DNA of 64,000 bases from Ophelia neglecta (Eukaryota): positions 130,820,001 through 130,884,000 of the forward strand of contig OZ260661.1 of the NCBI GenBank assembly GCA_965285935.1. Reading direction: 5' to 3'. Made by a program: the position numbers and the translations under genes. The first letter of the stretch is position 1, and every line of letters starts with the position of its first letter. The notes beneath the pieces are model-generated. The model was not told the DNA's origin and ran no database searches. It was given only the letters and a program-made list of their open reading frames with translations. Below, piece by piece: positions 6,301 to 63,422 of the stretch.

Positions 6301-6984
6301 GTGACCAGTCTAAGTCGTCTGAAGGTTATTTGATGTCGTCTGCTCTGGGTTCATTATCCTGTTGACCCAAGAGACAATCTTTTCAGCTCTCATATTGTAA
6401 TTCTCAGATTTGTATGGAAGGGGTGTTCCAATAAGACTGTTTCTGGGCTGATTGGGACAAGTTTAAAGATAGATGTATGGCTATCCTGACTCGAATCAGC
6501 CTTATTGGAAAGCGATTACAGTAACGAGAGATGAAGGTCAAACGTGCGAAGTTAATAAGATACGCATATAAAGCGCCGGAAATAGTAAACAAATGCCTGT
6601 GTCCGAAGAAAACTGAAGCCATAAGGTCATTTTTGACCTTTGGCTAGGAAACTGCTCTTAGAAACGCCGGGTCACAGCAAAAAGCAGGCGTCAGAATTGA
6701 TCAGATTAAAATTGGCGAATGAATTGAATTGGCGAACATGATTTATATTATACTAGAATTGATTCACCTTCTACAAAAGCAACAATTTAGGGAACCTAAA
6801 TTAGAATATAATGAGGAATATGAAGTCACAGAAAGTTATGAACATTCAAAATGACCATGCTGCATGCTATAAGAGGTAGTTAAAATAGCATATGTATTAT
6901 AAATTTAAAATTGTACTTGAAAGTGCACCTGAAAAACGCATTTGACAAAGAAAGAATCCTCTTTTCTTATCTATCTTTTTCTAT

Positions 6985-8200
6985 AGTATATTTATTTATG
7001 TACTTGTTAACCCTGGTTAGCCCTAGCAGGGCACTGTTTTTAAAGAGGCCCATTTTAAAAATTTGCATTTTACATTAGAAAATCATGTGTTCATATGTAC
7101 GCATACGGTACTTAGTTCGAAAATACACCTACACACAATGAAATACACCAAACTGGAGATCATAGATCATACATTCTCATTGCTGACATGATTACCTACG
7201 ATGCGTCCATAAAAATAGTTGATCACCATAATACAATACAATCACAATAGTTGATAAATTGTTTATTGTTGATGTCCCATATACATTTTTTACATCTTCA
7301 CTACAATAAAAGCTGTTCGAGCCAGAATTTCTGCCATTGCAAGAAAACCTTAATACTACTCCTAGAAAATTATTTCACATTCTAACTTCAATTCAGACGT
7401 TCTGAATCTGAACTCCTTTCCAAGACTCAATATCATGTCTCCACTGATGAGGTCTGCTTTAAATTTGCCAGTGTTCGCTTGGCTCGGCATCTTTAGTACA
7501 CTGGAGGCTTTGGTTCCTCTGTTTAGCAGTGTATTATTATAAGATAGAGAAGACAGTGAATGGGGAGAGAAGCAAGATTCTCTACCCGAGTTGACCGTAG
7601 ATATACTATCAAAATAGAGTTATTTAGTAACTGCAATACACGCCTTTCCATGTCGTCCAACCCTTGAAGCAGAATATAAATATGAATATTTTGAAACAAT
7701 GCCATAATGCAATTTTGAACCCAAGTAGGCTACTGCCTGGTTGTTCAGCGCAAAAGTCGAAAAGTTCCGTCAATGATGGTCGTTTTTCCTTAAACCTGCC
7801 AACATCTATCTGGTAGAAATATATTGTTATCATCAGTGCATTTGTATCCGAAAATAGTATAATAACAAGCCACATGCAGCCCTGTACCGCTATATCTGCA
7901 GAACGAAAACCTTATTTTTTCAACAAATCTTTCGTTGAAATCGTTAAACAGAAGTGGCACTAAAAACATCTTCACTGGCTAGGATCACGTGTCACAGGGT
8001 ACGCGGTAGAATTCGATAATAGTGCCTTGTCTTTTTTATACAGCCCCCTGACCAGTAATGTTTTAAATAACTTTCTTTCATTCCGGTAAAAAACAGTGTT
8101 CAATGCAATATTAATAGAGCTCAAGTCGATATACTGGTGTTTAAACAAAATACTAACCATATGCCGCGTGCTTGTATACGCTTTTTCTTTTGTTTTTATT
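6985..8200 (-). mobile_element. Highly degenerate non-LTR retrotransposon (CR1/L2-clade-like) RT fragment and 3' end
   Basis: Broken minus-strand ORFs give YIDLSS...LNTV, PVTRDPSQ/FLVPLLFNDFN and CTDDNNIFL in the order of RT motifs (DLSKAFDTV, GVPQGSILGPLLF..IND, ADDT.IF). AATAAATA-type tail near 6990. Confidence 0.5.
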
Positions 8201-9319
8201 TGGCAAAAATAGTTTTATAAAAGTGTTAATAAACTGGAACCGTTTTAAATACTAAACGGTTAATTCCAACTAAAATCACATCAAGATAACAAGCTACTTG
8301 ATAGCATTCACAAGTAGTTATTAAACAATAGTACATTCGTATTCATTCGTTGCATAGAAATGCTAAACGCTGCGATAAAATCGGGAACATTCTACCTGGT
8401 ATCTATAGTATTACATAATAAATGATGGACCATTGTCCTCCCCTTTTATCGCCCTTCTTATCGGCACATAGATCTAGTAGTTTATCATAATGACAAATGG
8501 GAAAACACAGAAATAAATTGTCTTACAATACTTTTATGAATGTTGGCTTTAAACTCTCTTATTTTTTAGCCATAAAAGATTGCCCTATGATCGTGTTTGT
8601 GAATAGGCTATTCTTTCCACCATGGATATGGTTTTTTTTATTATATCGCATTCAGCTGGCGGTAAAAATGGAATTCAATGTGGTTCATTCAGTATATGCG
8701 GCGTGTATACAATTATCCCACCGCATTACGTCATGTTCTATGCATAAGAAACGAGCGATAAAGAACTTCAATCGAGAACGAGTCAATAGATTTTGACTGC
8801 ATGCTATAACTTTTAAATTTTCAAGTTTCCCCGGAAGCGCAGTGCCGTGATAAAGACACAAAGATGTTTATATACTACTGAGTACTTTGTCTTTCCAGGG
8901 TTACTCAACATACAAGTACACTTTTTAGATATAAATTTGACAATTTATACTAAAATAACAACTTAATAGACCAATGTCCAGCCGCCAATAATATTGCGCT
9001 GGGCTTAAAGTATGTTCATATTTTGCTGAACTTGAGATATTTGTTAAAGCAGACCCGCAAACATATTTTGGTTGAGTTCATTTGAAATAGACTTGCTGTA
9101 TTGTATGTACATTTAGCATGTACCGGAAAGACTAACCGACAAGCTCTAAATCAATTATTGTTTAAACGAACTTGATAAAGTCATAATTTAACATTTTTCA
9201 TCGGCTGTACATTATGTGCCTACTTCATGATCATAATAAGATCAGTTAATTTTATATAATAATCTAACCGTATTTCACTTGTTACCATATTCACTACTGA
9301 ATAACAAAGGAAGTATTAT

Positions 9320-11151
9320 TGACGAGACAAATTATTCATTTATTTATGCAAAGAACACATAATATAATATACATTAACTTTGTACATGTCAACAGAGTAG
9401 CGATTGAAATCTGTAAGTTTGATATCCTAACCTAGGTATATAATAAGGTCTAATAGAAGTTGAATTCAAGTTTAATTTACCAGTCTCAGTATTTAGGTAT
9501 CTATATAATATCGCTCTTGGGTCAGCTTGCAACAACTAATTGAATATAAATTAAGAATTCAATATCTCCAATAAAACAGATGGGTGTTAATGCTGGTTAT
9601 AAAACCGAGTAAGAAGGACAAATTACAAAGCCATCAACCGCTGAAACACAAACGTAATTTCAGCAATGAAAATAATTTAACATATATTTCCGCTCATCAA
9701 TATTTAAAGAGCACTTATGGGACAATAAGTGTGAAGGTACCGATACATTTTCATTGTCACTATTATATTCATGTGTATCAGGGTGTCAGCTTTGTGTTGT
9801 ACCACTGGACAGTGTTTCGAAATGACAACAAAACATAATGAATGACCAGTTAATAGCCAGATGACCAAACATAGACAACTGGGCGTGTTACATTTGTTTA
9901 TGTCCTTCCACTAAACAGTTTAAACTTCAATGGGCGAAATTAAGGCCCCTTAATTGCAGTTAGAAATTAGTTGCACAAACAGCAGGTAAGTTAATGTTTC
10001 ACATTTGATGCATTCCATATTCCGAATGAAAACGATAAGAAAAAAATAACCCTTTCTGCCATGCATTCAAGTTGATTTGTGAAATGCATAACCCGGAAAT
10101 AATAATTCTTTTGACATCTAATGCTGAATGATGAAATTACAAATGGGCTTTTGTGGTATGGATTTCTGAGCTAGAAGTTGAGAGGAAGTTATGTTTGGGC
10201 AGCTCTCCTAACATATGGGAAGCGTACACTATACACAATGCCTTGTAATGCAACCTATGTCGTTATGGCAACGTAAAATGCCGGCTTATACACTCACACC
10301 ATAAATTACGTATATTCGGAAAGACACCGAAACTGGTTTGCATTGCTATATATTACATATTTTGTACAAATCCAAAGAGATCATGCTGCTAGTAGTTATG
10401 ATCATTAATATTACAATAATATTTTCACCCTAGTAATTGTATTGGTGACACCATGGCAACTATATACATGGCGGAGACACGTGGCACCAAAGTAAGGCCA
10501 GTTCCGGTAGTAGTACTAATAAATGTCTGTGGGTGCGTAGTAGTGTCTTCCATTTATGGTATTGCTCCCCCTGGTGTCTATAACTGGCGTTAATTCACAA
10601 CACTATCCAGACAAAAACCTACAATAAGCTGCATCCTTAGATTCCACACAGTCTTAATATCTGGTTATATAAAGATTTACTAAGTACGCGCCTGTGAAAG
10701 TAAAAGTCTTTTCTGGCCACTTCCGCTAAGAAAATTGTTCCAATACCAATTCACGCTCCTTTTATATCAAAGGTCCTATGTCGGTTTTCAAGGAATAGGC
10801 CCACGTGACTACATATGAGCTAATCCTCCTTTTTTGGCGGGCGACCGGGGTAAATTTAGGACCCATAGAACAAATCCGGAGAAGGCGTCCCTTTTAAAGA
10901 CAGTCACTGCGGCTAAACTGTTACTCCAACAGACGGTCTATAACAAGTATTTCTAAGATCACTGCGTCCTTGAGTTAAATTGAGACGTCCGGGCGAAATG
11001 CCTGCTGGGTAATACTGGGGAATGCGAACGCCAGATGGCGCTGGCTGACAGCTAGGGTGCCCCAAGTTCACTACGCACGTCTAGTGTTCTGGTTGTCGGA
11101 TCCTCAGACAAATGGCTAATGGCAAAATCGGTCACTAGAGGTCACTGGTTC
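9320..11151 (-). other. GATA123: Probable ~1.8 kb 3' UTR with poly(A) signal AATAAA at 9344-9339
   Basis: First AATAAA I found downstream of the stop, with UGUA elements just upstream (~9370-9386) and U/GU-rich sequence downstream. The end point is inferred. Confidence 0.5.
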
Positions 11152-11565
11152 CTATGCCATGGCGCCGACCATGCTGTGGTGATGCGGTGAATTGGTTGAG
11201 AGGTTGAGCCCTGAGGAAGTATAGAGGCTGGATCCGCCCATGCCCAGGGACCCGCCCAGGCTGCTGCTGGGATAGACACCCCCGAGGCCTCCCCCGAGCC
11301 CGCCGTTACCGCCCCCGTGGTTGGCATGCCCCGTGCTGTGGTGCATGAACCCGGTGCCAAAGCCTCCTGCGCCCGTCATATACGTCGGCATTGGTGTATG
11401 CATGGGGTGCTGGAGGTTGGGGGGACTGAAGGTTCCGAACGGCCGGTCCAGGGTAGGCTTCAGCAGGTCCATGGACCCATTCTTTCCCTTCTTCTTGCTC
11501 TTGGTGGACATCTTTCTGTTTCGGGTCTGAATACCGTCCTTTTTCATTGTCATGGGTCGGTTAAC
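11152..11565 (-). CDS. GATA123: GATA1/2/3 last coding exon (VNRPMTMKKDGIQTRNRKMSTKSKKK...HHHSMVGAMA*)
   Basis: Acceptor TTCCAG|; basic IQTRNRK tail; C-terminal SMVGAMA resembles GATA2/3 SMVTAMG; stop TAG at 11154-11152. Confidence 0.97.
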   Translation of the reverse strand, partial: VNRPMTMKKDGIQTRNRKMSTKSKKKGKNGSMDLLKPTLDRPFGTFSPPNLQHPMHTPMPTYMTGAGGFGTGFMHHSTGHANHGGGNGGLGGGLGGVYPSSSLGGSLGMGGSSLYTSSGLNLSTNSPHHHSMVGAMA

Positions 11566-11752
11566 CTGGAACATTAAAATATAAACATTAAATCAATGCA
11601 TCAAATACTAAACCATTAGTGCATAGATATACTCCAAAACATTTCATAAATATAATCCAAAAAAAGTAAACAATAGTATTCCTTTGACTTAATGTAAGTT
11701 GTCAACGGTACTTAAGTTGTTTAAAATTATCAATGTTAAATATTTTAGGCCA

Positions 11753-11895
11753 NNNNNNNNNNNNNNNNNNNNNNNNNNNNNNNNNNNNNNNNNNNNNNNN
11801 NNNNNNNNNNNNNNNNNNNNNNNNNNNNNNNNNNNNNNNNNNNNNNNNNNNNNNNNNNNNNNNNNNNNNNNNNNNNNNNNNNNNNNNNNNNNNNN
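11753..11895. other. Assembly gap (N run) in the last GATA intron
   Basis: Run of N. Confidence 1.
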
Positions 11896-14800
11896 ACTAC
11901 TCCATGGTATACTGCTTTCAAATAGAGCGGTGCTCGCGATAATGCCAAAAAAAAACAAGAGATTGCTCGTGTTATGGTACAGCACGAGTCAGGCAAATCC
12001 ATGATCTGTCAAAGGGCGAAAATACACTAATGACTTGATATATCTACAGCGGGGTTGACTGAACCCAATGAAGTCATAAATATGCCCAGGAATCAGGATA
12101 GCATGGTCAGTTGCCACCCCTATAGACGCAATTCCGATAATAATATTGCACTATTTTAGCCATTTCTCCTCTTTGCTCCACGACAAAATTCTCACGACTG
12201 ACGGAGGTGGGACTCATCAAAACAAACCTAAGCTGTCAAATAAAAAAAGCATGGTCAACCGTATCCATGGCTGAGAATATATTTTCTGTTGCCGCCTGCC
12301 AGCTGGGTTAAGTTTATGTTATCATAGCCTCACATCCCTTTCCCCGGGCTCGGAATCCCCAAACACCCAACAATAACAAACAGAACGGCTAAGGTAACTC
12401 CTATGACCTTTATTCCGAAATGTATCGGCTAGCAAAATGATTTTCCAATTCACTGAGTACACAACAACACAGCCAGATAAATATCAACGATAAAACTCAG
12501 ACTCTGGTCCGGATCATCCATTAGTCTCCCCAGGAATGAACAAACCCCAGGGAAACAACTAGTAAAACATAATGGCAAACAGAAAACAGGATTTACTTCT
12601 TGGCAATAGGTGATCTAGGAAAACATGCCATAAAAAACAGTAAATCTGCTGCCAATCCCGACTATTGTTTAGAATTAACAAGATAAGTTTTCTGGTAAAT
12701 TCTACCTTGTTGATTATAGACATAGCAGACATGTCGCTATATATGAGCGTTTGATTTTCAGTGATAAACACTGAATGTCTTTTAAATTAAAATGATGTCT
12801 TTACATATATGGTGGGTGTCGTCTGACAAAGAGTCGTCTGCCACCCAGGTCGTGTCAGGAGAGGTGGCCGCTTGGCGCCAGTCTCTTCGCCTCACCACCT
12901 CCACGTATGTTAGGCCATGAACATGATAACACTTCTTACATACCCCAAAGCATATGTTTATTTGATCACAATATTAACATTATTTTCTCTATAAACCATA
13001 TGAAAATGAGGATCAAGGGCGAAAACAGGTGTGCCCAGCCGTTCATATGTTTATTAAAGAGCTGTTTCTTAATCTTCATTTCTTGTTTTGGTCTGGTGTT
13101 GATCCAAAATGATGGTGCATGGGCTAGTATAAAAGCAGTTATCTTTGGTGTAAATACCATGTGTCTTTTGTACGTTGGGTCTAAGGGTTATATGGTACAT
13201 CATATACCTAAGATAAAGATAAGATCGGGGGCGGGAAGGTATCGAGAACAAGCCAACCAGAATGAGAGAACAAGATCAGGACAAGTACCTGACAAAACGA
13301 TAACTTTTATATGTATTTCGCTCCAATTGGTTCGAAGTCGTTTATAATCGACCCTTTAATTATGCAGGTTCATTGCATTTTATATCAAATTTACCACATT
13401 TATGAATGCAAATTTGGATTCACAGACTTTAGCAGTGAAAAGCCAAGTAGTGAATATGGTGCCTACTAGTCAAACCTTGCAGTTCTTCAATTACAACGAA
13501 AACAATAACTTTGAGCCACATTAGGGTCAAGACCAGGTGATCGCCCATAATGATAGCAAGTTTGTGATCAAATATTGGTGATTTCTCTTCATTTCAGACG
13601 ATTGCTGACGCATTAAGATGTAGATGGGTCCTCTGACTTTTCTTTGAAGCTGACTTTACCAATTCCACACCCTATCACTGCCGTGTAACTCGCCCAGCCA
13701 GACCGGGCAACAAGCACGTTCTCTCTCACCACGACGGCGCCAACTGGGTGTCGGAAAATATGCACCTCATCCAAAAACGGCTCCCGTTTCCCACCCGCCA
13801 AGCCACCAATATTACCAGGGTATCCGGTGGCCTATCAAGCAGAATAGCAGGCGCAAAGATGGCTAAAATATCGTGAAAATAGGTGGGAAAATTAACGAAA
13901 TACCAGGTTTAAACACCCCTCTAAGAGCAGACAGAGAATCACTTAGATTTGGAGACATCTGAGGTGGCCACAAAGGAGTTGGTTTACCTCTAATGTGTCT
14001 CGCAGTAATCAAGGCAGTGGTAATTTTATCCAATTCCACAAGTGGTAATGGGGTAAATAATACAACCCGCTGGGCACCCACCGCGTTCTACAAAGGATTG
14101 CGTACCCTAAAGTCAATACTCCATACTTCTATTTGTCAATCGCCATGTAACCAACAGACTCGCCTGCAAGCTAACAGAAAGAACCCCTTTTAATGTCAAA
14201 TTATCCCAATAATAGCCAAGCAGAAGTTGATGGGACTATTAACAGAGCGAGGTTTCTTTGCTGAGCACTTATCTCCGCGTTCCTCAAGCTCAGATCTCTC
14301 TCTAATATTACATATTGTGCCATGCCAGTCGCCTAGCGTCACATTTGATTAGGACATGTCAAGATCATTTAATGTGAAGTATACATTTAGCTAACATATA
14401 TAATTAAATGGAAGGATATTTAATTTCAGTGAATTGCTATGCAGTTCTGCTTCTGGTGAAACCAAATATATTCCATTGGAATGTTATGGAACACTTTGTT
14501 ATGGGGGGTCTTCGCATCACAGACAAGAACTCACCGGGGTAGTAATCAGAAAAATACACATATAGTGTTGCCCTCTTGTACAGTAACTTATAGACACCAA
14601 ATTGATTTCTTAAATTACAGAATGTTTTTTTATCATCACAAGCGCCATATCCTTGTATAAGACTGGGAGTGCTTGTCGCCCCATTTTTTATCAGGAAAGA
14701 ACATCTGGATCCATGTTGAACTTTGACAAAGAAAAGGCTAAAATTATATATATATATATATATTTGTGTTGTTTTACAGCAGAGAATGAGATAAATAAAG

Positions 14801-17755
14801 CTACAAAGTCATCAACCTGAATATAGGCCTATCGGGTCAAGTTGAATTCATTCCGCAAGTCTATACCTCTACTTAGTGAGCGAAATTAAACGTTGCTCCA
14901 AGGCAGCGGTCTTTAAACTGTGAGCAGAATTAACTATCTTTCGTGGGATTAGTTCTTTTTGGGAGAAATTATACGATGGGCAAAATAGCCTGACTTAATC
15001 CAATATTTAGCAAATAGGACTATTTTTATATACATGGTCTGTACAGCTTTATTGGCCCAAGAGAATGGATCAGGTTTCATGTGCCTCTGATCACATCTGA
15101 TTTAGAAAACCTCCACTTTTTATTTGAAGTTTAACCGAGATGTAACATTACTGTGTGTCAAATAAACTTCATTCGTGTCATTCCGGTGTCTTCTTGTAAA
15201 TGGGTAAATGTGTTTTGTGATGTTTTCCGCCACTTTTCCCGTCGTTATCCGGTGAACAGCAGTTACTAACAATTTATGAACTCAAAATACGCGAAGTCAC
15301 ATCCAGTAGCTAAGTGAGTTTCGATACATTAGCAAATTTGGCAAAACATCCCCCAAAATTATCACCCCAGCATGGCTCCAGCAAACCTGCTATAGTCGAC
15401 ACCTATAGCCACGGGCAATACATTGTCCATTTTAGCCTCGACAATATATCTACAATAACAGACATTTACGTGCCTCCAACTATTGTTTGACTGCTCCATT
15501 AAAGTTTGGTTATGTAGGGATATGGCCGTAGTTAGTTTTATTGTGTTTAGATGGTGCAGTAGGCGTGTTGATGGGGTTTGGCGCTGGGCGAGCGTGCGGA
15601 GTCCATTATGGCCCAGCGTGCCTACCTCCCCCTAACCCCTACCCGCTAATCACCTGTCCTGACACCCTAAGGCATTCCTAACTCCTACCTATATAGTCCG
15701 CCACCATTGTCCAGCAATATTCAAATGTCTTAGATCGCCATTAAATGATAAAACTCGCTCTGGATGAGCTGGCATCACTCTGTAGCTTATTTTCTTTCAC
15801 TGCTTTCCAATTGCACATTTGTATGATGCAAATATTGTTTCACAAGTTGGCATGCGTACATAATATATGGCCAGGTTCGGTCTCAAGACAAACAGGAGAA
15901 AAAATGCTGGCGCCAGTTTGCTAGTTAGAACATAATCTAAATTGTACAAAGGTGTCGACATTTCCTTGTCAGGTGACTTTTGAATAAAGCACACATGCCT
16001 GTACAAATTTATCCTTAATGGGAAAAATTGGTCTCTACACCGGAATGAATTTCTTTTCTGGTGGCTTGTGCGGTATATGTCTGGTAGACATCAAGGTATA
16101 CTGCTCTTACAAGTTAAAGAGATGGTTATCAATTGGTGGGATAAAATAAAATGAGGCTCGGTGATGTTCACCTTCTGATGCACATCTTCGCACTCATTTT
16201 TCCCTCCTCGCGAGGAGCTAACCTCGGCCATTAAACACCCAACTGGTATAATACAATCCGAGGTAAAATTCATTGTGGCATTCCAAAAAGGTCGTTTGTT
16301 CATTGCTGTGTTTACATACACATAGATCGCACACGGCAAAAAACTCCATGTATATTTTATGCACACTCTGGAGGCGGGAAAGAACTTGGCTTTGCACGGC
16401 TGCTTGCCATCGTCCAAGGTGTCTTGTCTGTGATTCTTATTGGTCTAAGGGGCCTCTAGAGAACATGTCAACTAGGCAGGAAAACAGAAATGTCTGTTTG
16501 TAAGGGCTTTAGCACTTTTTGGAGACAGGCTTGTGTTATTTCTTGAGACTCCTTATTGCGCATGCGGCGAGTTCTAACGAGTCAAATCTTCATAGGAGCT
16601 ATTGGTTGTGTAAACAAGACTAGCGCATTATCTTGTGGAAAAATATTCTCATTATTTCTACTGTGCTTCATTAGCTTTCTCATACCAAATTAATTGATGG
16701 CACCGCCGTTATCTATCAGCCCCCTCAGCGGGACGGCCATGCTGAAAGAAACCAACTGTTCACAGCTATTTCTAACCCGCAGTAAACGTTCTGCTTAGAA
16801 AATAAACCGTTTGGGCGCAGTTACTGCGGTCGGAATACCCTGTCTATCGCCATGATATCTCTACACAAGCGAATGTAAGCGTATTATTACAAAGAATTAC
16901 AGCTAAGAAAATAAAATGTGGTCCCACCGAGTCCGCCAACTCGATTGGAAAATCAGCCACATGCCCTGGTGCGGCTACAATTCTACTAGCCCAATTGAAA
17001 CGAGGCTCGGCTGATCACAACCGATTACCAGCAATAATTATTCATTTTCAGGCTAAGCGTTTGTTTTGATTGCTATTGTGCGGCTGGATTAATCATGTAA
17101 ATATTTCATAAACAATCCAGCTCCCCACGGAACTAGCTCAGACGAGGGTCAGTGAAGTGGGGCCTAGCAGCTTTAAGCGCCAAGTCAAATTGTCGTCTGC
17201 CAAATTGAGCTCAGCATGGCCTTACAAGTACAAACAACATACTCGGCTGAAACGCTTTAACAAATCATAAATTGTTAAATTTATTAGGGGATCACAACAT
17301 AATTCAAAGCAAATTCCATTTAACTCCCTCGTTTATATACATAAATCAAATTACAGAATATGTATGCTTATATTATTATTAACTTTGCATTGGTAAACCC
17401 TAGAAAAAAAAACACTTATTATTTTTATTTTGTCCAATGCAAACTAGCCCGCTTTAAATATGAATGTCAGGTCCTTGTTAGAAACAGGAGAGCATTGAAC
17501 ACAATTTTTTTCTTCCCAAGTATTTAATTATTTTCCTCGATCCGGAGAACCCGCCCTCAAACCCTCGCCCCTTCTCGCTTTGAGGAAGATCAGACGTGTA
17601 ACTAGCAAATCGACAGGTGTGCCCTTGCCGTAGAATAGTCTAGAACCAGCCACCAGCACAAATCACAGGGTGATTAAAATAGACTACAACATAGCTACGA
17701 AACTTGATACCAAAACACCCCGACCCCCGCTGATACAGCTCTAATTTACCCTTCA

Positions 17756-18232
<477 letters not shown>

Positions 18233-21200: not shown

Positions 21201-22084
21201 GGAGCATAGTTCTGAATGGAACATGTCGGTGCCGAAATCATTGTTTTAAAATCCGGCAACTGCAGGCGTTTTGACACTAATATAGTGAGTGTGTAAACTT
21301 ATGTGGTGACTCTCGAGGGCATTGTCCGATATTAATATCATCACGTGACATGGGATGGATTCATAATGATTACAAAGTTGATACATAAGCCTATATTAAC
21401 ACATGTAATCTAGCACAAATTTGTTCTCAAAATTACACCATATGTTTATTTCCCCGTGCCTTTCCAGGAAATCGTAACTGCATCCATATATATAAGTTTA
21501 AAACACAGAAGAAACTGACTTAGGAATTTAAGAAACAAAAATTCACCTCAGAAAACTGTAGTATGAAACTAAGCTGATTGAATAAAGATGTCGCCACCTC
21601 AGCGTGCCAAGAAGATTAAGAAAAAGAACTCTGAACTGGCCTTGTCTACATATTTTATTATAGAATGGGGAATGTATCGTGTAGCTTTAGTATCTAATTG
21701 CGAGCAATGGAAGCTTCCTGTATGGAATAGATACTAGCTCAATAACTAGAACAGGAAATGTTCGATTGTTCGCAATTCCAAATCATTTCCTTAATTTCCA
21801 ATCGTAGCTTATAAGAATGAATACTGTGTCACACAAATGCTGTCAGCCAGGCCCAAACATTAAACATTTTACCATGCAGTACCAAACCGTCTATGCTTTT
21901 CATTAAATATAGTTTCTTAGTAAATGTGCGTTTTTGCCTATCATGAAGCATCTAAAGATTATTTTTACATCAGTTTGTTTTTCATTATAAGAAAATTAAT
22001 ATATTAATATTGAATAACAATAAATGGAGATAGCATATGCACGGAGGGTGTTATTTGTTTCTTCGATTTTATTTATTGGTATTA

Positions 22085-22291
<207 letters not shown>

Positions 22292-23737: not shown

Positions 23738-23827
23738 TCGGCGAGAGGGATACCGGGGATCTGAGGGTCCGGCCGCCCGACTCGGCGAGAGGGATCCCGG
23801 TGATCTGAGGGTCCGGCCGCCCGACTC
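23738..23827. repeat. 44-bp GC-rich tandem duplication (2 copies)
   Basis: TCGGCGAGAGGGAT(A/C)CCGG(G/T)GATCTGAGGGTCCGGCCGCCCGAC at 23738 and 23782, two mismatches. Confidence 0.9.
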
Positions 23828-47550: not shown

Positions 47551-47700
47551 GATTTGATTTGATTTGATTTCATTTATTTGCAACATATATTACAAAAACA
47601 GTTACAAACTAATAATTAATAAGAGATAAATGCTGCTGGACGCCAGTTATAGCCACAGCCGTTGATGCTGGACGCCCATGTAAATATATTCAGCTTTGTT
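47551..47700 (-). mobile_element. Probable 3' tail remnant of a LINE/SINE
   Basis: Minus strand ends AATAAATG(AAATC)4, the poly(A)-signal plus microsatellite tail typical of CR1/L2-clade elements. Confidence 0.4.
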
Positions 47701-48413: not shown

Positions 48414-48533
48414 ATAACACCGAGACTGGTGACCTGTATCGACGGGAAGGTCGTCTTTGATCAGCGGGACTATGAGGCGTACCTCACTCTGCTAGGCATG
48501 GGCAGCCGTCATCCCATCGCGTCCGGACGGCAG
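48414..48533 (+). other. Orphan exon candidate (120 nt, open in phase 0: ITPRLVTCIDGKVVFDQRDYEAYLTLLGMGSRHPIASGRQ)
   Basis: Polypyrimidine tract + TAG acceptor, CAG|GTGAGC donor, GC-rich block in AT-rich flanks, one open frame. No family recognised. Confidence 0.4.
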
Positions 48534-51500: not shown

Positions 51501-54500
51501 AACTTTGATAATTATCAGCTGGGACTGACTGCCTTCCCATGGACCTACCATGCCTACAATTATATATTATGTTTATGCCTGGCTACAGTATGTACAGTTA
51601 TTAATTATAATATGCAGCCAATCACTCTCAGGGATGGTTCCCACCGGATAGTTAATTGTCGCAAGGGGTCTGCTCAGGATAAGTTAAATGAAAACGGGAA
51701 TACAAGATGGATATTGCCCAGCATGTGCGATTCAATGTGCCAACTATGTGCCAAATTAGCCCGTTCAATGTGTATTTGAACTTTTTATTTAATAAAATTG
51801 TAATTTAGTGAGCATTTCCTAATTATCATTTTATCTATCAATTTTTGTTGTGCATTCTATGTCATCGCCGATTGTACATTAATTGTTTAATTCAGGTATG
51901 AAGTAGAAATCAATCTTTTATTGAAAATTTGAAACTAAACTTGAATATATATTAGCAAGATATCAACTGGAAATTCATAAACGAATTTCCCAAGTGAATT
52001 AGTGAGCATTCGACTCATAGTAATGCTGAGTCACAATGGCCAGGATTCGCTAAAATAAAACATGGCAGTGTACCGGGATGTACTTGTTCACCCAGCAATA
52101 GACATGTCGAGTTGGTCACCAATTACGGAAAAATAGCAAATATAATGCTTGTGTGGCTCTGTAAAACAAAGAATAATCGTCATTGCCCGCGGCACAGTCG
52201 AGCCGCCGACTTTCCGGCGTTTTGCCACCATTTTGTCTCGGTGACATGCGCACTGACCCGTTTCCGGCGACAATTACCCTCCGGGGCAGACGACAATTTA
52301 CAGCCCGCGTGTTAAGCGCTCTGCCGTTCGGGGCGGTCACGGATCAGGGCCCATCTCCGCCTGATCTCAGCAGATAAGCTATTCTGATCAGCTCTCGATA
52401 ATTTTGGCGGCAAAACTCAGAGCGAACGTTTGACAAACGATCATGTTGGGGGCAGGAGCCCTTGCAGCTAAAATAAGGGTGAATTTGGACTGAAAAGAGA
52501 CCGCCCTGGGAGAATAACACTGTTAATGTTATCGTATTGATCGGCAGACGAGTTAGGGAAAAGAAACATTTTGTGAACCAAAGAAATTTGAAGCTACCAA
52601 TCCCGCCATTATTCTAACATCTAGAAATTTATCATATCCGCTTGCAGTAATTATGTAACAAAACGACGCCCTTGGGGTATACTCAAACTTTTCAGTTGCA
52701 CATTTAAAGCTTTAAATTTCACCGTCTTATATTAAAAATATTTGCCATATTGATAAGACATGAAACAGAGCATAGATTTCATGGAGCATGCATATAATTA
52801 TGACAGCTAATAGCACCAACCACAATAAAGGCAGTAGGCCTCGTAAACATTTTCAAATAAGCGCCATTGCCGTTTTTGATAGGACTCCAAGCTTATTTTC
52901 TGCGGAATTTGTCCTTTTCCATTTTTTACACCGGCGAACTTGCAGCAATGAAAATGTAGGCTTACTTTAATATATTCCACCACTTATTGCACATTTTAAC
53001 CTCTGAGTGAGAATTGGGGTAGAAAACGATATTTGATTGTTTCATAATTTATCTTTTATTTGTGTTTCATACTATGAGATGGTATAATCTATAACATTAG
53101 TTCGACATCGATCTTATATACCGACAATATTGATTTCATGTCAAAAGGTGCATTACATTGACTCCGTACTCCGTACTCCGTACATTGACCCCTCTCTCCC
53201 CACAAACAACCTACCTATAACTTATGGTGGGATGATAAATAAGCTATAGGGCCTCAATCAATCTATCTAATAATCTGTGACATATCTGCCACGTTCGCGC
53301 TTAAATATATTCCTTTGTTTTTCACCCCTTCAGGTTTGATTTTATTCCGGTAGAATTTGATCTCGATCCGATCCGAATGATATCTGAGAAATTCATCATC
53401 ACACATCTGAATTTGGAACTGTATGTGGCATTTGCATCGAAATTGTTGGACAATATATTATGCACAGTATGGCTGAGCCCATCTGATAACAACTATCTTG
53501 ATTTCAAATTTCAAAATTGTGAAATTATAATCTACAAAATATGGCTTATCTGCCTTCACAGATTGTTGGTATCAACTGTGCGCGCGTGGTGCTGACAAAC
53601 TGCGAGCAGACGACACAGCCGATAACCCAATTCAGCTCACGATTCAACCAATAAATCAGTCCTATGTCAGGCACATTCACAGATCCCTTTCTCTCGAATA
53701 TCGATAACAAAACCAGCCGAGTTGGAACTGATAATCATCTGCTCAACAACCTGTTGCAGTGGGCTCCTAATTGTAGAACGCTTTGTTTTCTAGAAGGATA
53801 CATACAATACAGGAACCGAGACTGCACACGTGGATCAATTGACAAAGATTATTGTTTTAAACGGCACTTGATGTTCGGAATATTAATAGGTAATAAATAT
53901 TTAAACGTTGCTTGTTGAATTATAAATTGCAGACGATGATTGTGCATCTGGTATACGCGGGAAATGGAGTTTAGTTTTTTCCTGGCGAACATGGCCTATA
54001 TAGGTCTGATATTTTATTTGTTGTGGGCCTACATAGGCCTACATTGAAAATGTGATTATTGTAATTTATAAAAAAAACACAGGAATAATAAGACCTATTA
54101 CATTAATCTTTTTGGCATAAAATTGATAATTAAACTTTATAAATGATGTTTACGGATTGCGGCGAATTTGTGGCAACCGGTTTTATAGAAAAACATTCGC
54201 TTATTTAAAAAAAAATTATCATGAATTTAGAATATTTATAATATTCTATCTTGTTGAACAGTTTTGGCAAGTATATTTTACGCGTAAGTGGAAAATGGTC
54301 GATATATACTCCCTAGTGCACGAGCTTGAATTAAAAGTGCTGGTGTATTGTGTATTCAGTCTTATTGATGTAAAATTAAAAAATTTAGGAAACTGTGAAA
54401 GAAATACATAAGTGGACGCGTGTGACAAATTACAAGCAGTGCGAGTCGGGAAGATAACACTTTTGATTAAGGTGTTTGGGTTACAGATCCCCTGGAATGT

Positions 54501-54696
54501 TATCCTAGAGGCAATGCCTTTACTAGTATATTCCTATGATTTATGTTAATCATTTAACTGTGGATTCAATACCATTCGGTAGGCAAATAGATAAGTAGAT
54601 CGCTGGAAACAAGCTTTAAAAATGATTCAACTGTCCCAGGCCTAGCTAGAGTTTGTATACACTAACGATAGGTCATCAGCTGTACAAATGTATATA

Positions 54697-54874
54697 CAGT
54701 GAAACCTGTGAATTAAGACCGCCAAAGGGACTGGAAAATGAAGGTCTGATTTCAGAGGTGGTCTGTTTAGACAGGTTATTTAACATTGAAAGTAAACACC
54801 ATGGTCCTCATTTTGGTGGTCTGAATTGACAGGGGGTCTGATTATAGAGGTGGTCTTTAAGGCAGGTTTCACTG
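54697..54874 (+). mobile_element. 178-bp MITE, same family, full copy
   Basis: Perfect 12-bp TIR CAGTGAAACCTG...CAGGTTTCACTG flanked by TA target-site duplication; internal GGTGGTCT repeats. Confidence 0.9.
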
Positions 54875-56947
54875 TAGTTGCCTTCAGATATATCTGGGCC
54901 GATTTGACTGAACGAGCATTGTACATAATGTGACGAGTGTGACAGGAAGCTATGATAACATGACAGGGGTTAAGTGTACAGAAAGAAAATGTTCTCCTCT
55001 AATCCCTTCTGTGAATATTAAATACATAGTAAACCAACCATGAATTAATTAACTGAGCGCTTCAGGTGAAGAACCGGCCTGGGCTGATCTGTCAGACTTT
55101 ACCATAGCGTGTTTACAATATCCAATGACAGAAGGGCCTGCTTGCCTCAATAGTCAAGATTTTACCGACCTCGCCTTTTTCGAATACTATACACGAGCTC
55201 ATGTTTATTTTTAAGGGTTTCTAACAGCTCTCGCCAGGGCACAAGTGGCTCCTTCGGAGCCTGTTTTGCCTTGACTTAACCTGTGGGCACTCACAACTTA
55301 GACGTTCTACTTACTGCAGATTGTTGTCATTTATTTTTATTAAAATATATATGTATTGCAACTGAAGTCAAAGCTCTTATGGTCGTCCAAACCGAGAAAG
55401 ATCCTTCAACTAGTGCTATTAAGAAGTGGCTAAAAAAATCTAAAAATATTGTTTAAGTCGACAAACAATACAAAAACGTAATTGGACATTATTGAATTAT
55501 TTCTTTTTAAAAATAATTTGAATATACCTAGACCTATATTCAGTACGGATGCTTCCCTCTTTGATTAGTGTGTGTCACTGACTGAAAGTCAACCCCGTGC
55601 TAGTGACTTTCATATGTTTAGCCGAAAACATTATAATTCAAGTGAACTTTAATTCAAAATAAATTTTTAGTTCCCATTGAGATAAAATACAACAAAATAA
55701 CATGGACACTAACCTAAGTACAATAGGATAATAATGATAATAATAATAATAATGTTAACAACAGTTACAAATTAATAAAGTAAAGGAACAAAGGGGACAA
55801 GACTCCGGACTGGAGTATGGGTCCTGAACTTAGCTACACGAATGAATTTCAAATTAACAAATTAACAGTGAATACAATAAATGAAAAATATGAAGATTAA
55901 CTATAAATATTTCCAAAATAAATATTTCTACATCTAAGACCTAGGAGGAGTCCTGTACTGATCAAATAATTTAGCTATAGAAGTTTATTTATGTCGGTAT
56001 CATTCTATGTGTTTTTTTAATACACAAAGTACCAAAGCGTATGTGGCTTTTGAAATATTTATTTTCTGAATAGGTAAAGCTTTAACGTTGAATAACTATG
56101 ATTACATAAATATGACGTAATTCCAGTTTACCTTCTGATGACTATTATGACAATACTAATCAGGCGTGTATACTCAAGAGGGAAGAACTAACGAATACTT
56201 CTTCTTAGAATACATTCCGATATGTCCATATCCTTATATGGGCCTAGGGGTGTGGCCCTCATAGGCAATGACGCGACCCTATAAACAGTTCTTAGAATAA
56301 TTAGCCTATTTCCGGTTCATTTTAATCACAACTCACGAAGTTATTTTAAAAAGAAGGAATCACAAGCTATGTATGTCCGGAAAGAGCATTAGCAAAATGA
56401 GACATCACGGATAAGATGTCGGAAATGAAAGTATTTTCATCCTTCCTGGGAGTCCATCCTCTTCACTTTCGCAGTATTTATGAAACATCCGTACTGGAAA
56501 TTTACCGATAATACACGGCACGAAACTAAGAGATTATATGACTTGGGCACACAATGCAATGTGTCGGCTACTCTCCTTCTTTTCGGCGTAGAAACTTCCG
56601 GATTTGGGTCCTACCCAAATAAGGAGGGCGCTTCAAAATGGTGCCGACCGTATGCCGAGTCTCTGCTGTCGTCTGCCCGAGAACCGCCTCCAGTTTATAA
56701 ACCAACCGGCCATATTTCACGGGCGAAAAGCCGAGAAAAAGCACAAAAACCAACACCACTGGCACAGATCGGCGTTTTATCTGGCCGCCGGCATGAGTGC
56801 ATCTTAAAATTCTGAGCGTATTGGCCATTCTGTGTGAGGTCGGTGGCAACAATCGTAGGCCATCCTAATCTGGTGGTGTTCGGGAGAGATAGCGGGCCTT
56901 AGGGCGGGGATGGGCTCGCAGAGGGGCAGATAGAGAGAGCTACTCAC

Positions 56948-57023
56948 CTTATCTCGGCGACACACGCCTAGTTAGCTATCGCTCCAATACACAGCCACCG
57001 ATAGCCCACTCCCGTCTTTTATA
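56948..57023 (-). promoter_or_regulatory. Candidate distal TATA promoter plus short non-coding first exon
   Basis: Minus-strand TATAAAAG at 57023-57016 and perfect donor AAG|GTGAGT after 56948, in a CpG- and GATA-rich island. Confidence 0.4.
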
Positions 57024-60000
57024 TGGCGGGCGAATTAAATATGTTTATCACTACGGTCTAATTAAATGATCGATACGGTCGCCATCGATGGAGTGATACG
57101 GCTCACGACGCGGCGGGATAGCAGGGCGCGCCTGAATGTAGTGCACCAGATCACACATATTCTGGGCCCGAATCACTACGCATCACAATGTTATCTGCAA
57201 TAGCCCTTATCGAGCATAAAGGGTGCAATATTGGACATCTATCCTCTCGAAAGCCACATCCCATCTCGCTCGAGATTATCTCGGCCGATGTGTAATTTTC
57301 AATATTTTCTGCCGCCCGATCAATGATTCTCGACGAGATAACTTTACATAAACCGGAACTGCGACATCGAATTGAGACATTAAGGAGCGGCTTTAAATCA
57401 GAAAAATAACCGAAAATACGAATTTGAGAATGATAAACGGGAGGCGTTCGTTAGAGGTTTCCCCCCGATCCAACCCATAACCTTTTGCTCATTCTTCACG
57501 GCAGACGACAAGCCAGAGTAATAAGATTGACTCTATTTCTAGGTTTCTCCCGCCGGGCTTCTCGGATTAAGAATACCTAATAAACAATGTCCTTATGATG
57601 TAATAAGAAGGCCCAGTAGATCGAAATCGTTGCTGATTTACGCCTAAACGCGTCCAAGAAACCTGCTAACGCCGCCGATTGTGATTCAATCCATTATCCG
57701 GGCCGCGTTTAGTCAGAGGGCAGATTGAAATCGGCGTTGTTGATGTGTTTTAGTCTCTGAGCAGACTTGTAAGGTCACCAGCCCTGATACTGATAGTCAA
57801 CATATTTACAAACCTCCATCCAATCCCTGTCGACGTCCATCTTGGCCAGCGGGTGTGTAAAGTCACCTTACCGAACTATTCAAAATCTGGCCTACACTTT
57901 CTTGTTTGGGTATTTATCACAATGAATGCCAAAAATATTTTGTAATGATATTGAATGTCATTCTAACAGAGAAAAGACGATCCGAAAATTATCATGAGGT
58001 AATTCCCTGATTGGATCATGAATGAGAACATCCAAGGAAATGTCTTTTCCTTGGATTAAATTGATTGTAAAAGCTGCGAGAATAATTCGTCCACATAGCA
58101 GACGAGTTTGTTAAATTAACTTACACTCCACTAGACCAAGTACCAGTAACAAAAAAAAATATAATATAGCTGTTGCAATGAGGTAGCAAGTATAAATATT
58201 ATGTGTTGCTGTGTTTCCTCGTGATCATAAATGAATTGTTTCCACTTTAAAAAAGCAAAGAATTTTTTCAGTGTAGGCCTACATGTACATGGCTTGAAAT
58301 TGTGTTAATTGTTGTTCAAACCAGCAATATACGCCTTATGCAAATTCATGAAACCGACTTCGACAAAGGGCCACCTGTGTCTACGATATAGCCAATGTGC
58401 TCTTACAGTTATATATATATATGTTTGTGTGTGTGTGTGAGCTCTTGTTTTTATTCAGACCGCCCTCTCAATGCATTTTTACAAAGCGGGATACTGAATT
58501 GAATCCTACATGAATAGTGTGTTGCATGGCAAATGTTGTCACCAACAAATAACAGAGACATTATGTAAGTTGTACCCGGAGAATTGTTAACTTGTATTAC
58601 AGGCCAAATCCGAAAAAAAAAATCTAGTATGTAGAGTAATGACTATATAAAAGCCCGGAAATGTAATTTCAAAACAAGGGGCCACTACTAAGCCGGGGGG
58701 AGGGGGGGGGCTTAAAATTTTTGTGAACTATATATTAACGTATAGAAGGGAGAGGGTCTAAGCTGGGGTTCGCCCGGGGTCCAGGCCCCCCGCCCCCGGG
58801 GTCCTAGGGCCGTCCCCCTGACGAGATATCCGACAATAATTTATCGATTGGCATGTCAAAAAATTATCTGCATTAATTAATTAGTAAAAACGTCTTTTTT
58901 TAATACATCAGTGCGCTAGTTGTTTACATGCAGCCTTAGTATAATTACATACACTTATTTAGGTAGGCTTGGTATAAAACCGACTATTAATTAATGTGTG
59001 CGTGTGTGTCTAAAGATATATTATATAAATTATCATGACAATCAGTATACAGAATTTACATATCCTATTTTTATATATGATTTTATATCCATGCATGTGA
59101 ATGAATTTCAACCCGTCTCATGTAAAAAACGTGTTACCTGTATGATTGTACAAATATATTTCGCTGGATCCCTAGGAAAAACATACTACCGTTAGGGGTG
59201 TCTGGAATAAAGATATTTAATAATCTTGTGATATAGATATATATTGTTTCCGTTCAGATAAAATAAAGTTGTGTAAGCATAGCATTGGTGTCTTACACTT
59301 TTATGTTTAATATTGAATTCCTAAGTCACTATAAATGTTGTAGATTTATACCCTTTAATACAAAAAAGCACATTATAAATGTATCGATCTCTCGTCATTT
59401 AACTATAGTGTTCCAATGATTTTGCCAGGTTAAAATGCTGTTTCTAGATCAGAAAACAACTAGAGTCGCCTAGATTCGGCGAGGCTCTGAGAGGCGGCAT
59501 ATTGTCGGCCCGGCCACCAAATACTCCAAGTCTAAGCCGCTTTGATATAGCTATAATTGTAAAATGGCGGGCTAGCTTTATATGGCTCGCAGCTGAGGGT
59601 AAATCGACCCGTGTAGTCGGGCTGCCGAGCCTCTCGCCTACCCGGCGCGTCCGACCCCAATCCCCAACCTACATCAATCTTCCCAAATGCTCGGTTGCCA
59701 TAGCAACTATCGGGACTTTTGCCGTTTTGAACATTTTGCGCATTAATCTGACATCTCGCCGTAGTCTCGTTGACGACTGGCTGTATTCTCGGGCCGAGTG
59801 GTTAGCAGGAGGCCTGAAGGACGCACAACGATTTGGGTGGGTCTATCCGGTCTGTACGGCAGAACCACGCAGGGTTAGCTTCTGGCAACGCTAATAGCGA
59901 TGGTGGCGGATTTTAAGACGCCATGATCGCGGTTTTCGATAAGCAGACGACACAGCTAAAATGTCAACTGATAGGATGTATCTGCTCCGGTCTGTAAAGG

Positions 60001-62279
60001 AACCTAATTAGGAAGAAAACATTACCTATTATAAAATAATTTACATTAAATAGTACTATCACTGCCACCATACATAGCATCTGATCATTGATACTTCGAT
60101 CGATGCCATAATAATTATTCACCAAACATGTTACTTCCGATCAAATCAGAGAAAAACAGCAACCAATCCACCATTCTAATTTATACTTCACCATCTGGTT
60201 TCGCAGTCATGTTTCTAAAGGGAAAAATGACAGTTCAAAAATGTACAATATACTTTATCGGAAAATCAGGCAGAAGCACATGTTTCCCCTCGAACATAAA
60301 TGGCCGCCAGTAACAAAGACCTTAGAGAAGCGAAGATTTTTTTTGAATAGTAATCATGTTTGTGGTGTTTTGATACATCCTTGAATGGAATTAGTTTAAC
60401 AGGTGTTCGAGCGATAAGACAACAGTTGGATTTCCAGCACGTTCGGACATCTCGCTAGTCCGTGATGGGGCATGATAAAAAGATATTAGTCTTTGGGCTG
60501 GATGAATTTCCAACGCTGGTCACATTCAGCGGCTATCACGTGATGTCAATCAGCGGACCAATCAGGTGATCAATCGATCAATCAGTATTATCTCTGTCAA
60601 ACGATTCCAGGCCAGCCAGACGCTGCATCGATTCACACCATACAAGCGCAAATAATCCTTTCCGATTTCACTTTTTCATCCGTCGCTGATCCGTTTATTG
60701 CTTTCCGAGTGTGGCGAGTCTGTCGAGTTTGTATTTTAGCAGTAACATCTTTCAGTCATGAGGTGACATCTCAGGGTCAGACCATGTCGTCTGTGACACT
60801 GATCCGGTTCCGGTTAGGAGCATTGATACAATGACATTGATCTGACATTCGGCGGTAAGTCGGTCATTCATATGCGCGGGGGACCTGTAGTACGCGGATT
60901 TGGTAGATTTGCTAACAGAGAGGGGATTGGCACAGGTAACCATAGCAACCAAAACAAAGATCTTAAACTTGAACAGGGCCCAATAGCGAAGTACAACATT
61001 ATGTAGCAGAAAAGTGACATCCCATTCAGATAATAATACGACCAAATATGGCATCCCGTTCAGACAATATTACGGCCAAATAAAAAGAGCTCGATCTACA
61101 ACTTACCACAGAATACAAGGGAAATGCAGTGTTTCCGACCTTATCACTTTTCCCTTTCTGTCTTCAACAAGTGCCCCCCCCCCCAAGCCCCTCAAACAAC
61201 TCCCGCTCTGCATATTCTTCTTCTGATTATTAGTAGGCCTATACATAGTGTCTGTCTATGAGAAGGACTAACTCGTTTTAGAAACTGCCTGTTACTTCCT
61301 GTCTTGCCTACCGCATTCTTTCGACAATGTTGTCCCTGTCAGGCAATAGACAATTTTAAAACTCACGCCATTTCATCCACCCCACCCATCCGGCCCCCCT
61401 GCACCCCACCCCCTCCCCTCCAAAAAAAAACACTTGAGCATCCTCCTCGCGTAGCCCCTGGCCCCACGCCCGGCTAGAAAGAATGCTATATCCGTTAGGC
61501 TATCCCTCCCTCCTTCCGTCACAGGTCCCGTGACGACGTCTGACCAACATTTGCTGCCCAATCCCAACCCCCTCCCCCCCCCCCTTCCCCGTCTTCGCTC
61601 CTCGCAGGCCGACATCAAAGTTTGGACAATGGCGCCCCGTTATCAGCCTGTACCACGACCTCATCAGCTCTCTCGCCTTTGTACCGACCAGTCATTCTCC
61701 TAATAAGATCAGAGTCCCAATCTTCTTCATACCACCTTAATGACTAATTTGCTGAATTTGCAAACACCACATGTGCACATGGATGTCGAAAGCGATATGT
61801 CTTCTCGCCACAAGCCCACAGGAAATCGTCTGCTCGGAGGCGCGAAAATTAGACGGACGCTGTGTTTGGAATCGTCTTAGGAGCTCTCCACTGGCTGATG
61901 AAAGAAGTAGGAAAATGACGGGAGTCGGCTTTGAAACAATCCTGCTTAACTCGGCCTGTCCCGGGGATCACAAACGAGCTAAACACGAACTAATGCCAAG
62001 GTAAACGAATCATAACAGATTGCCTATATGGCCGGGTTATTGTCAGTCCTGTCTCGAGGGACTAATGCTATATTTTGGCCGGTCAATAATTGCACTGGAA
62101 GTGCACGACAAGACAACTGAGAACGGAAATCATCATTTATGTTTTCACAAGGCTTAGCGAAAATCTCGTCAGTATGTATCAACTGTCCATTCTCAGACTA
62201 GGCATTGGGAAAAACATGGCGACGCCGCATCAAAGCCGCAGCCCGCCACGGAAGGACGGCAGCACTGGCCTCATACCTG

Positions 62280-63422
62280 GTGAATCCAGATGTCGTATGG
62301 GTGTGCCACCCCCGGATGTCGTAACAATATTACGTAATCATGAGCCTTACCAATGTGCCGTATTCAGTTGTCGCATTCGTGTGCCGTATCCACAAGCATG
62401 TTGTATATTCAGGTGCTGTACCCAGATGTCGTACTAGTGTGACGTATCCACATGTTGTTTTCAGGACTGTCGCCGTATGCAAATGTCGTCTGCGTGTGCC
62501 GTATCCAAATGTCGTCTGCATGTGCCGTATCCAAATGTCGTCTGCGTGTGCCGTATCAAATGTCGTCTGCGTGTGCCGTATCAAATGTCGTCTGCGTGTG
62601 CCGTATCAAATGTCGTCTGCGTGTGCCGTATCACATGTCGTCTGCGTGTGCCGTATCCTAATGTCGTATTTAGGTGCCGTATACAGATGTCGTATGTGGC
62701 TGCCGTATCCGGATGTCGTATGTGAGTGCCGTACTTATATGTCGTATGTGGCTGCCGTATCCGGATGTCGTATGTGGCTGCCGTATCCGGATGTCGTATG
62801 TGGCTGCCGTATCCGGATGTCGTATGTGGCTGCCGTATCCGGATGTCGTATGTGGCTGCCGTATCCGGTTGTCGTATGTGGCTGCCGTATCCGGATGTCG
62901 TATCCGGATGTCGTATGTGGGTGCCGTATCCGGATGTCGTATGTGGGTGCCGTATCCGGATGTCGTATGTGGGTGCCGTATCCGGATGTCGTATATGGGT
63001 GCCGTATCCGGATGTCGTATGTGGGTGCCGTATCCGGATGTCGTATGTGGGTGCCGTATCCGGATGTCGTATGTGGCTGCCGTATCCGGTTGTCGTATGT
63101 TGCTGCCGTATCCGGTTGTCGTATGTGGCTGCCGTATCCGGATGTCGTATGTGGCTGCCGTATCCGGATGTCGTATGTGGCTGCCGTATCCGGATGTCGT
63201 ATGTGGGTGCCTATCTAGATGTCGTATTTAAGTGCCCTATCCAGATGTCGTATGTGGGTGCCGTATCCGGTTGTCGTATGTTGCTGCCGTATCCGGTTGT
63301 CGTATGTGGCTGCCGTATCCGGATGTCGTATGTGGCTGCCGTATCCGGATGTCGTATGTGGCTGCCGTATCCGGATGTCGTATGTGGGTGCCTATCTAGA
63401 TGTCGTATTTAAGTGCCGTATC
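62280..63422. repeat. Minisatellite, 25-26 bp unit (CCGTATCAAATGTCGTCTGCGTGTG grading into CCGTATCCGGATGTCGTATGTGGCTG), ~40 copies
   Basis: Directly visible tandem array; the 26-aa periodicity of the overlapping ORFs equals 3 x 26 nt. Confidence 0.97.

Follow-up and report, generated by a model that had tools for sequence, protein, structure and literature searches.

An exact CpG-containing word fills the landscape of a GATA gene in Ophelia neglecta, recurs near homeobox genes, and may be the site of a sequence-specific DNA-binding factor

Several described systems mark a chromosomal territory with a short DNA motif, including the Pho/YY1 sites of Drosophila Polycomb response elements, the MSL recognition elements of the fly X, and the rex/MEX and pairing-centre motifs of C. 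elegans. Developmental regulatory landscapes are long, transposon-poor and Polycomb-regulated, and developmental genes such as Hox, NK, engrailed, GATA, and coe constitute the classical Polycomb target set; to our knowledge, how large landscapes of this kind are specified is an open question outside flies and vertebrates. Here, we describe the word RGCAGACGAYA, which is dispersed through a 64 kb stretch of the Ophelia neglecta genome (the window, meaning this whole stretch) that carries a GATA1/2/3-type gene. Two further types of site share part of this word. One is the Thing1 (Th1) or D-box sequence CGTCTG of Hand1, a degenerate E-box bound by Hand1-E12/E47 heterodimers (PMC3084786). The other comprises the SMAD-related elements of bone morphogenetic protein (BMP) signaling, with the formulas GRCGNCN5GTCTG for the silencer element (BMP-SE) and GGCGCCAN4GNCV for the activating element (BMP-AE; PMC9508838).

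Counting was performed on both strands, with N left out of all denominators. The window contains 32 copies of the 8-mer GCAGACGA, against 0.76 expected from dinucleotide-preserving shuffles (shuffle maximum = 3), and 19 copies of the full 10-mer GCAGACGACA, for which the same background predicts 0.04. Twenty-five copies are dispersed, 12 of them full 10-mers, and the other seven copies of each word are located in one minisatellite. A second background, based on an order-3 Markov model with tandem arrays and homopolymer runs masked, gave 25 versus 1.26 for the 8-mer (z = 21) and 12 versus 0.11 for the 10-mer. Because the (G)CAGACGA(CA) family remained the top-ranked of all words at each length from 6 to 10 after this masking, the enrichment is not produced by the choice of word; the same word also ranked top in an unbiased contrast between the words of the domain described below and those of its flanks. 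An earlier sequence-only reading of the window had listed 25 dispersed positions, including twelve full 10-mers. All of them were found, displaced by two bases at most, together with seven further 10-mers in the array at 62484-62645, and the over-representation claimed there survives both backgrounds as well as comparison with the genome-wide rate. An Rfam search of the window returned no match, and a literature search on the word or parts of it yielded nothing beyond primers and oligonucleotides without any relation to it; a match to TCGTCTG in a Smad paper was dismissed as the filler of an artificial reporter.

The sites are concentrated in a domain with sharp edges. In the comparison DNA, which consisted of the window and 100 kb on either side (264 kb in total), 42 of the 45 copies of GCAGACGA lie between +6336 and +93618, and three in the other 176 kb. 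This dense zone of ~88 kb (+6 to +94 kb) contains ~35 dispersed sites and the 7-copy array, with one site per ~2.5 kb, and takes in the GATA gene with its introns, its 3' flank, and ~60 kb upstream. A protein-kinase open reading frame (ORF) at 93.5-94.5 kb and a long interspersed nuclear element (LINE) at 96.3-99.8 kb form the right edge, beyond which lie leucine-rich repeat genes and a long terminal repeat (LTR) retrotransposon. Long transposon ORFs are present in the flanks and none lies inside the domain, and both GC content and the observed/expected ratio of CpG (CpG o/e, 0.7-0.9) are alike in and out of the domain across the 264 kb. Compared with the genome-wide rates (26,791 8-mers and 7,634 10-mers in 762 Mb), the domain is enriched 11.7-fold in the 8-mer (P = 3e-25) and 19.9-fold in the 10-mer (P = 9e-17).

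Two assembly gaps interrupt the window. Gap 1 (11753-11895) interrupts the intron that separates the last exon of the GATA gene from the second zinc-finger exon, and these two exons are collinear and on the same strand. Gap 2 (45461-45681) is located upstream of the gene, and the finding is independent of continuity there. The 300-bp flanks of each gap have no 14-mer in common, no motif site abuts a gap, and both gaps together could hide ~0.15 sites at the density of the domain.

Alignment of 48 CAGACGA sites of the locus showed a near-invariant consensus of 10-11 bases, RGCAGACGAYA, mostly in the form GCAGACGACA. Information is found only at R(-2), G(-1), CAGACGA, Y(+7; C in 26 sites and T in 10), and A(+8), and it is ~0 throughout the remaining positions between -25 and +31. 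This agrees with the unrelated flanks noted in the sequence-only reading, as does the lack of BLAST similarity beyond overlapping windows. That none of the 25 dispersed sites falls within the five GATA coding exons was likewise borne out.

The word is also enriched only as a whole, with no tolerance for substitution. The exact 10-mer occurs 17 times in the domain and never in the flanks, whereas the 24 one-mismatch 8-mers, pooled, show no enrichment, with 46 copies in 85 kb of domain versus 79 in 176 kb of flank. Among the 16 forms of N-CAGACG-N, G...A alone is enriched (35/3, domain/flank), the bases that flank the CAGAC core being as fixed as the core itself. Moreover, the CpG within the word is retained in a genome in which CpG is depleted: 35 intact sites stand against five of the decay forms GCAGATGA and GCAGACAA in the domain, versus three against 12 in the flanks. 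Genome-wide, the 7,634 intact 10-mers outnumber the three decay forms taken together (6,993, from 14,627 - 7,634). Relative to a reversed control, the bare 8-mer is just 1.17-fold enriched in the genome and the 10-mer 4.6-fold; two 12-mers show 13-fold and 4.4-fold excess, and at position 9 C makes up 58% of GCAGACGANA. Therefore, the excess belongs to the extended exact word, of which there are ~6000 copies in excess genome-wide.

Beyond the GATA locus, we compared the positions of the word with those of homeobox genes, using the first 100 occurrences of the 12-mer AGCAGACGACAT, which cover C1 from 0 to 106 Mb, and homeobox positions from a Pfam search of the genome. Sixteen of 98 sites lie within 50 kb of a homeobox match (5.3-fold, p = 6e-8), and the association stays at 4.2-fold (p = 3e-4) when the Hox and NK1 regions are removed. 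The Hox region (C1:60.45-61.40 Mb) contains 11 sites, against 0.87 expected, and three of the sampled 12-mer sites are found inside 22.5 kb at coe. No enrichment is seen at the protein-kinase and helicase loci of this sampled stretch of C1, which have one site versus 1.5 expected (0.7-fold).

Within the domain, the placement of sites is indistinguishable from random (coefficient of variation of the gaps, 1.03), and the intervals between the 25 dispersed sites of the window range from 25 to 10314 bp. Close pairs on the same strand are mildly in excess (4 versus 1.04, p = 0.02). The sequence-only reading had placed many sites in CpG-rich islands together with GATA and TGACA motifs, and this was borne out in part. 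CpG is modestly raised within 50 bp of the sites (4.9 versus 3.5 per 100 bp, z = 3.5), with GC at only 0.455 versus 0.415, and TGACA is 1.8-fold more frequent over the same distance (p = 0.01); WGATAR shows no enrichment near the sites. Strand orientation comes in blocks: the eight sites between 6.3 and 28.9 kb are on the minus strand and the next five, between 30.1 and 35.7 kb, on the plus strand. Strand runs number 12 versus 18.5 expected (p = 0.02, or p = 0.04 with close pairs collapsed), and for the 7-mer core 18 versus 25 (p = 0.03). The word points away from ~29.5, 45.0, and 57.1 kb, and the last of these points is flanked by the sites at 56667 (-) and 57501 (+), around a candidate distal promoter.

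From the observed enrichment, domain edges, specificity, CpG retention, and homeobox association we infer binding by a protein and an effect of that binding. In our judgement, RGCAGACGAYA is probably the site of a putative DNA-binding protein, or pair of proteins, with very high sequence specificity, and its copies would be under selection across developmental transcription-factor landscapes. The sequence-only reading had proposed the site of a sequence-specific factor, and a putative site of this kind remains the best reading in view of the over-representation, the unrelated flanks, the all-or-none specificity, and the preserved CpG. The putative factor would read the exact word, and selection would keep many copies of it through regulatory landscapes; that selection maintains exact copies in developmental-gene landscapes is the best-supported interpretation of these sequence patterns. 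The sites cover the landscape of the GATA gene and stop where the neighboring gene and transposons begin, and the factor would act on the whole domain, not on single enhancers. Such a domain-level role is suggested by the random domain-wide placement, the sharp edges, and the presence of the word at loci with unrelated expression; action on the whole domain seems most likely because Hox and other homeobox loci of this kind carry the word as well. The role itself could consist in setting or stabilizing a chromatin state, for example of Polycomb/Trithorax type, or in enhancer-promoter tethering. Input to tissue-specific enhancers, or a BMP/SMAD element, would be less likely.

Several observations weigh against this interpretation or limit it. 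A transcription factor would usually tolerate some mismatches, and here there is no such tolerance. The orthologous GATA loci that were found are distant (~50% amino acid identity, the best relatives of exon 2 being only ~50% identical) and can be aligned in exons only, and two of these loci carry one 8-mer each, which speaks neither for nor against conservation of the sites. A second sample, of GGCAGACGACAG, gave a weaker homeobox association (2.8-fold), with part of its sites within tandem repeats, and ~80-90% of the sampled sites are not near a homeobox gene. Finally, the reach to developmental genes in general is limited, because the sampled part of C1 holds so few Forkhead, T-box, and basic helix-loop-helix (bHLH) genes that their position tests are underpowered; what this extension rests on is the homeobox genes and the present GATA locus.

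The word could instead provide ordinary enhancer input from a conventional shared upstream regulator, an explanation that we regard as unlikely. A Twist/Hand-family bHLH protein with an E-protein would be the candidate, because the Hand1 D-box CGTCTG, a documented Hand1-E12/E47 site (PMC3084786), reads CAGACG on the opposite strand; the core hexamer is thus identical, CpG included. The sites lie in slightly CpG-richer patches with TGACA nearby, they include the mild excess of close same-strand pairs, and a canonical E-box in the same flanking context, GCAGATGA, occurs five times in the domain versus two in the flank. The informative positions (two bases, the hexamer, and two to three bases) span ~10-11 bp, which would fit the contacts of a bHLH dimer and be compatible with the size of its footprint. 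However, the published D-box consensus is GGCGTCTGGC, with flanks GG-CGTCTG-GC, whereas here T-CGTCTG-C alone is enriched; C-CAGACG-C, which has the published Th1 flanks, occurs 2/2 (domain/flank) and GCCAGACGCC 0/0. Canonical E-boxes are not co-enriched (0.95-1.35-fold in the domain), mismatches are not tolerated, and the sites are randomly distributed across 88 kb and shared with Hox and homeobox loci of unrelated expression, which is to say domain-wide at many loci and not grouped in a few tissue-specific enhancers. Random placement in the domain and occurrence at Hox and homeobox loci would fit a landscape-level mark better than an enhancer input specific to GATA. The sequence-only reading had taken the sites as marks of enhancers that may be methylation-sensitive; their tie to CpG-rich patches is weak, they show none to GATA motifs, and CpG o/e hardly differs between the domain and its surroundings. 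A Hand-type bHLH protein is therefore named here as a candidate reader of the word, and not as grounds for placing the word among the described Hand1 sites.

The sequence-only reading had also pointed to a SMAD/BMP link, since the core CAGAC/GTCTG (PMC11607640, PMC9508838) is contained in the word, and SMAD-binding elements would make GATA and other genes responsive to BMP or TGF-beta. This link did not hold up, and we consider it very improbable. With the full word blanked, CAGAC occurs at 1.86/kb in the domain versus 1.71/kb in the flank (1.09-fold), GGCGCC is at 0.71-fold, and GTCTAGAC occurs once in each. The BMP-SE formula is absent from both domain and flank, the BMP-AE formula occurs once in the domain versus twice in the flanks, and positions +9 to +15, where a pMad half-site would lie at the required spacing, carry no information. 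Moreover, neighbors as fixed as the core would not be expected for a short MH1 site. Even less probable, in our view, is that the sites are functionless relics of a transposon, a miniature inverted-repeat transposable element (MITE) or an expanded minisatellite, or a product of composition or mutation bias. Seven copies do lie in a minisatellite here, and the word is found in other tandem arrays of C1 with periods of 12, 96, and 736 bp, but a tandem repeat as the whole explanation accounts for 7 of the 32 copies only, the other 25 being dispersed. Compared with one another by BLAST, the flanks (150 bp) of the 35 dispersed 8-mers gave only physical overlaps and one marginal 14-bp match, where random position sets give 8-36 such matches; given this and the absence of information in the flanks, the sites are not fragments of a repeat family. 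Neither shuffles nor the order-3 Markov model explain the counts, CpG o/e is equal inside and outside the domain, the CpG of the word is retained and not decayed, and the long transposon ORFs of the flanks are missing from the domain. For the dispersed sites, the relic explanation is largely refuted.

Set beside the systems introduced at the outset, the probable protein-binding site RGCAGACGAYA resembles the domain-marking motifs in being a short word concentrated in defined chromosomal territories, and a Polycomb/Trithorax-type motif in its concentration at Hox (11 versus 0.87) and homeobox loci (5.3-fold) and in the GATA domain (12- to 20-fold). It differs from the domain-marking motifs in sequence, in occurring every ~2.5 kb instead of being packed into elements of a few hundred bp, and in its apparent lineage restriction. 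What it may have in common with CTCF-type sites is the strand orientation in blocks, together with the arrest at domain edges. Unlike such sites, the word carries a weak orientation signal and fills the domain, not its borders, and it does not seem to resemble the conserved CTCF consensus. As to CpG-island elements, the patches around the sites are only modestly CpG-richer, within a CpG o/e range that holds throughout the 264 kb. The positions of the sites and of the GATA exons in the window are listed in Table 1. The exons were searched singly, and the product of coding exon 1 resembles the GATA2/3 N-terminus.

Table 1. Copies of the word and coding exons of the GATA gene in the 64 kb window.
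Feature	Position	Strand	Remarks
Motif-dense domain, part within the window	6334..64000		runs on to ~+93.6 kb, ~29.6 kb past the right end of the window
10-mer GCAGACGACA	6334..6343	-	second core CAGACGAC at 6315, 21 bp off, same strand
GATA1/2/3-type gene, last coding exon	11152..11574	-	ORF ending ...HHHSMVGAMA; no motif site
8-mer	12834..12841	-	second core CAGACGAC at 12819, 15 bp off, same strand
10-mer	17191..17200	-	intron below the exon of the second zinc finger (ZnF2)
C-terminal GATA zinc finger	17972..18046	-	inside exon ~18075-17950; exon ends approximate
8-mer	19513..19520	-	intron
8-mer, GCAGACGATA form	19855..19862	-	intron
N-terminal GATA zinc-finger exon	22097..22254	-	78% DNA identity to an orthologue locus
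8-mer, GCAGACGATA form	24050..24057	-	intron
10-mer	25360..25369	-	intron
Coding exon 2	27350..27883	-	ORF; 22 homologues, best E 8.5e-42; 3' end approximate
8-mer	28929..28936	-	intron 1; closes the run of eight minus-strand sites
8-mer pair, same strand, 25 bp apart (30053, 30078)	30053..30085	+	opens the run of five plus-strand sites
10-mer	30412..30421	+	intron 1
10-mer	31316..31325	+	~440 bp below coding exon 1
Coding exon 1, starts MEVAQEHQ...	31759..31990	-	ORF; ends approximate
10-mer	35653..35662	+	upstream of coding exon 1
8-mer	42609..42616	-	
10-mer	44849..44858	-	
8-mer	45197..45204	+	264 bp left of assembly gap 2
10-mer	52286..52295	+	
8-mer	52544..52551	+	
10-mer	53606..53615	+	
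8-mer	53929..53936	+	
10-mer	56667..56676	-	left of candidate distal promoter 56880-57440
10-mer	57501..57510	+	right of candidate distal promoter 56880-57440
8-mer	58098..58105	+	
10-mer	59943..59952	+	
8-mer	61826..61833	-	
Minisatellite units (n = 7), 25/26 bp, each with the 10-mer	62484..62645	-	

Other repeated sequences were noted in and around the domain. The 26-bp minisatellite at 62472-63422 is made up of two unit families: the seven leftmost units carry GCAGACGACA, and the adjoining main family, TGCCGTATCCGGATGTCGTATGTGGG (62649-63421), is without the 10-mer and differs from the seven by two substitutions within the word. Upstream of GATA coding exon 1, at 36655-37694, there is a tandem array of ~46 copies of the 23-bp unit CCTCACCCTCCCTGTGAGCTGAC, with a GC content of 0.56 and a strong C-over-G skew, which sits at a plus-to-minus switch of motif strand. 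The second most over-represented 8-mer of the window is the palindrome TAGGCCTA (10 versus 1.09, order-3 Markov), dispersed at 14824, 43389, 54034, 58274, 61234, and other positions; it was rejected as a domain-specific word, with seven copies in the domain versus eight in the flanks. A second set of apparently domain-specific words, TACAGGTAACAAGACC, was rejected as well, as it stems from a local, non-dispersed 20-bp tandem array at +88.1 to +89.3 kb (degenerate; unit TTACCTGTAACAAGACCCTG). On C1 (149.5 Mb, 20% of the genome), the tandem arrays that bear the word are located at C1:3290393 (12-bp period), C1:21029711 (96 bp), and C1:50208934-50213926 (736 bp). At C1:3512985-3531355, GCAGACGACA recurs seven times, each time on the plus strand and at spacings of 1.9-3.9 kb; this stretch represents either a dense domain of the motif or a segmental repeat in tandem.

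C1 also holds about half of all homeobox matches of the genome and few bHLH, Forkhead, or T-box matches. At least 10 homeobox matches, all on the minus strand, fall within ~0.55 Mb at C1:60.53-61.08 Mb, an arrangement that resembles an intact Hox cluster. Outside the motif-dense domain of the GATA gene, a plus-strand open frame of 440 amino acids at +106.4 to +107.7 kb begins near ...IWFQNRRRKD, like the end of a homeodomain, and has no Pfam match. The region from +130 to +146 kb is GC-rich (up to 0.58) and satellite-like, with plus-strand open frames rich in proline, serine, and leucine; an LTR retrotransposon, with pol ORFs between +138.7 and +143 kb, interrupts it. Single-exon protein-kinase ORFs of ~290-310 amino acids form large tandem expansions at C5:111.3-115.9 Mb, C1:135.9-140.5 Mb, and C9:15.8-19.8 Mb, and the kinase ORF that bounds the motif domain on its right may be related to them.

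A further proposal, which we put forward tentatively and with clearly less confidence than the binding site as such, is that the word acts as a cis "address label": a lineage-specific factor, possibly one that depends on orientation, would read the exact word and specify Polycomb/Trithorax-type, transposon-poor regulatory territories through hundreds of such domains, with tens of sites in each. If this were true, the address label would amount to a sequence-encoded definition of genomic regulatory blocks, of which we know no description in animals. Should the reader of the word turn out to be a known family in a new use, such as a bHLH pair on a D-box-like site, this would also be informative. 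One exact word with sharp domain edges and a link to Hox and homeobox genes offers a simple and directly testable handle on how such landscapes may be specified.

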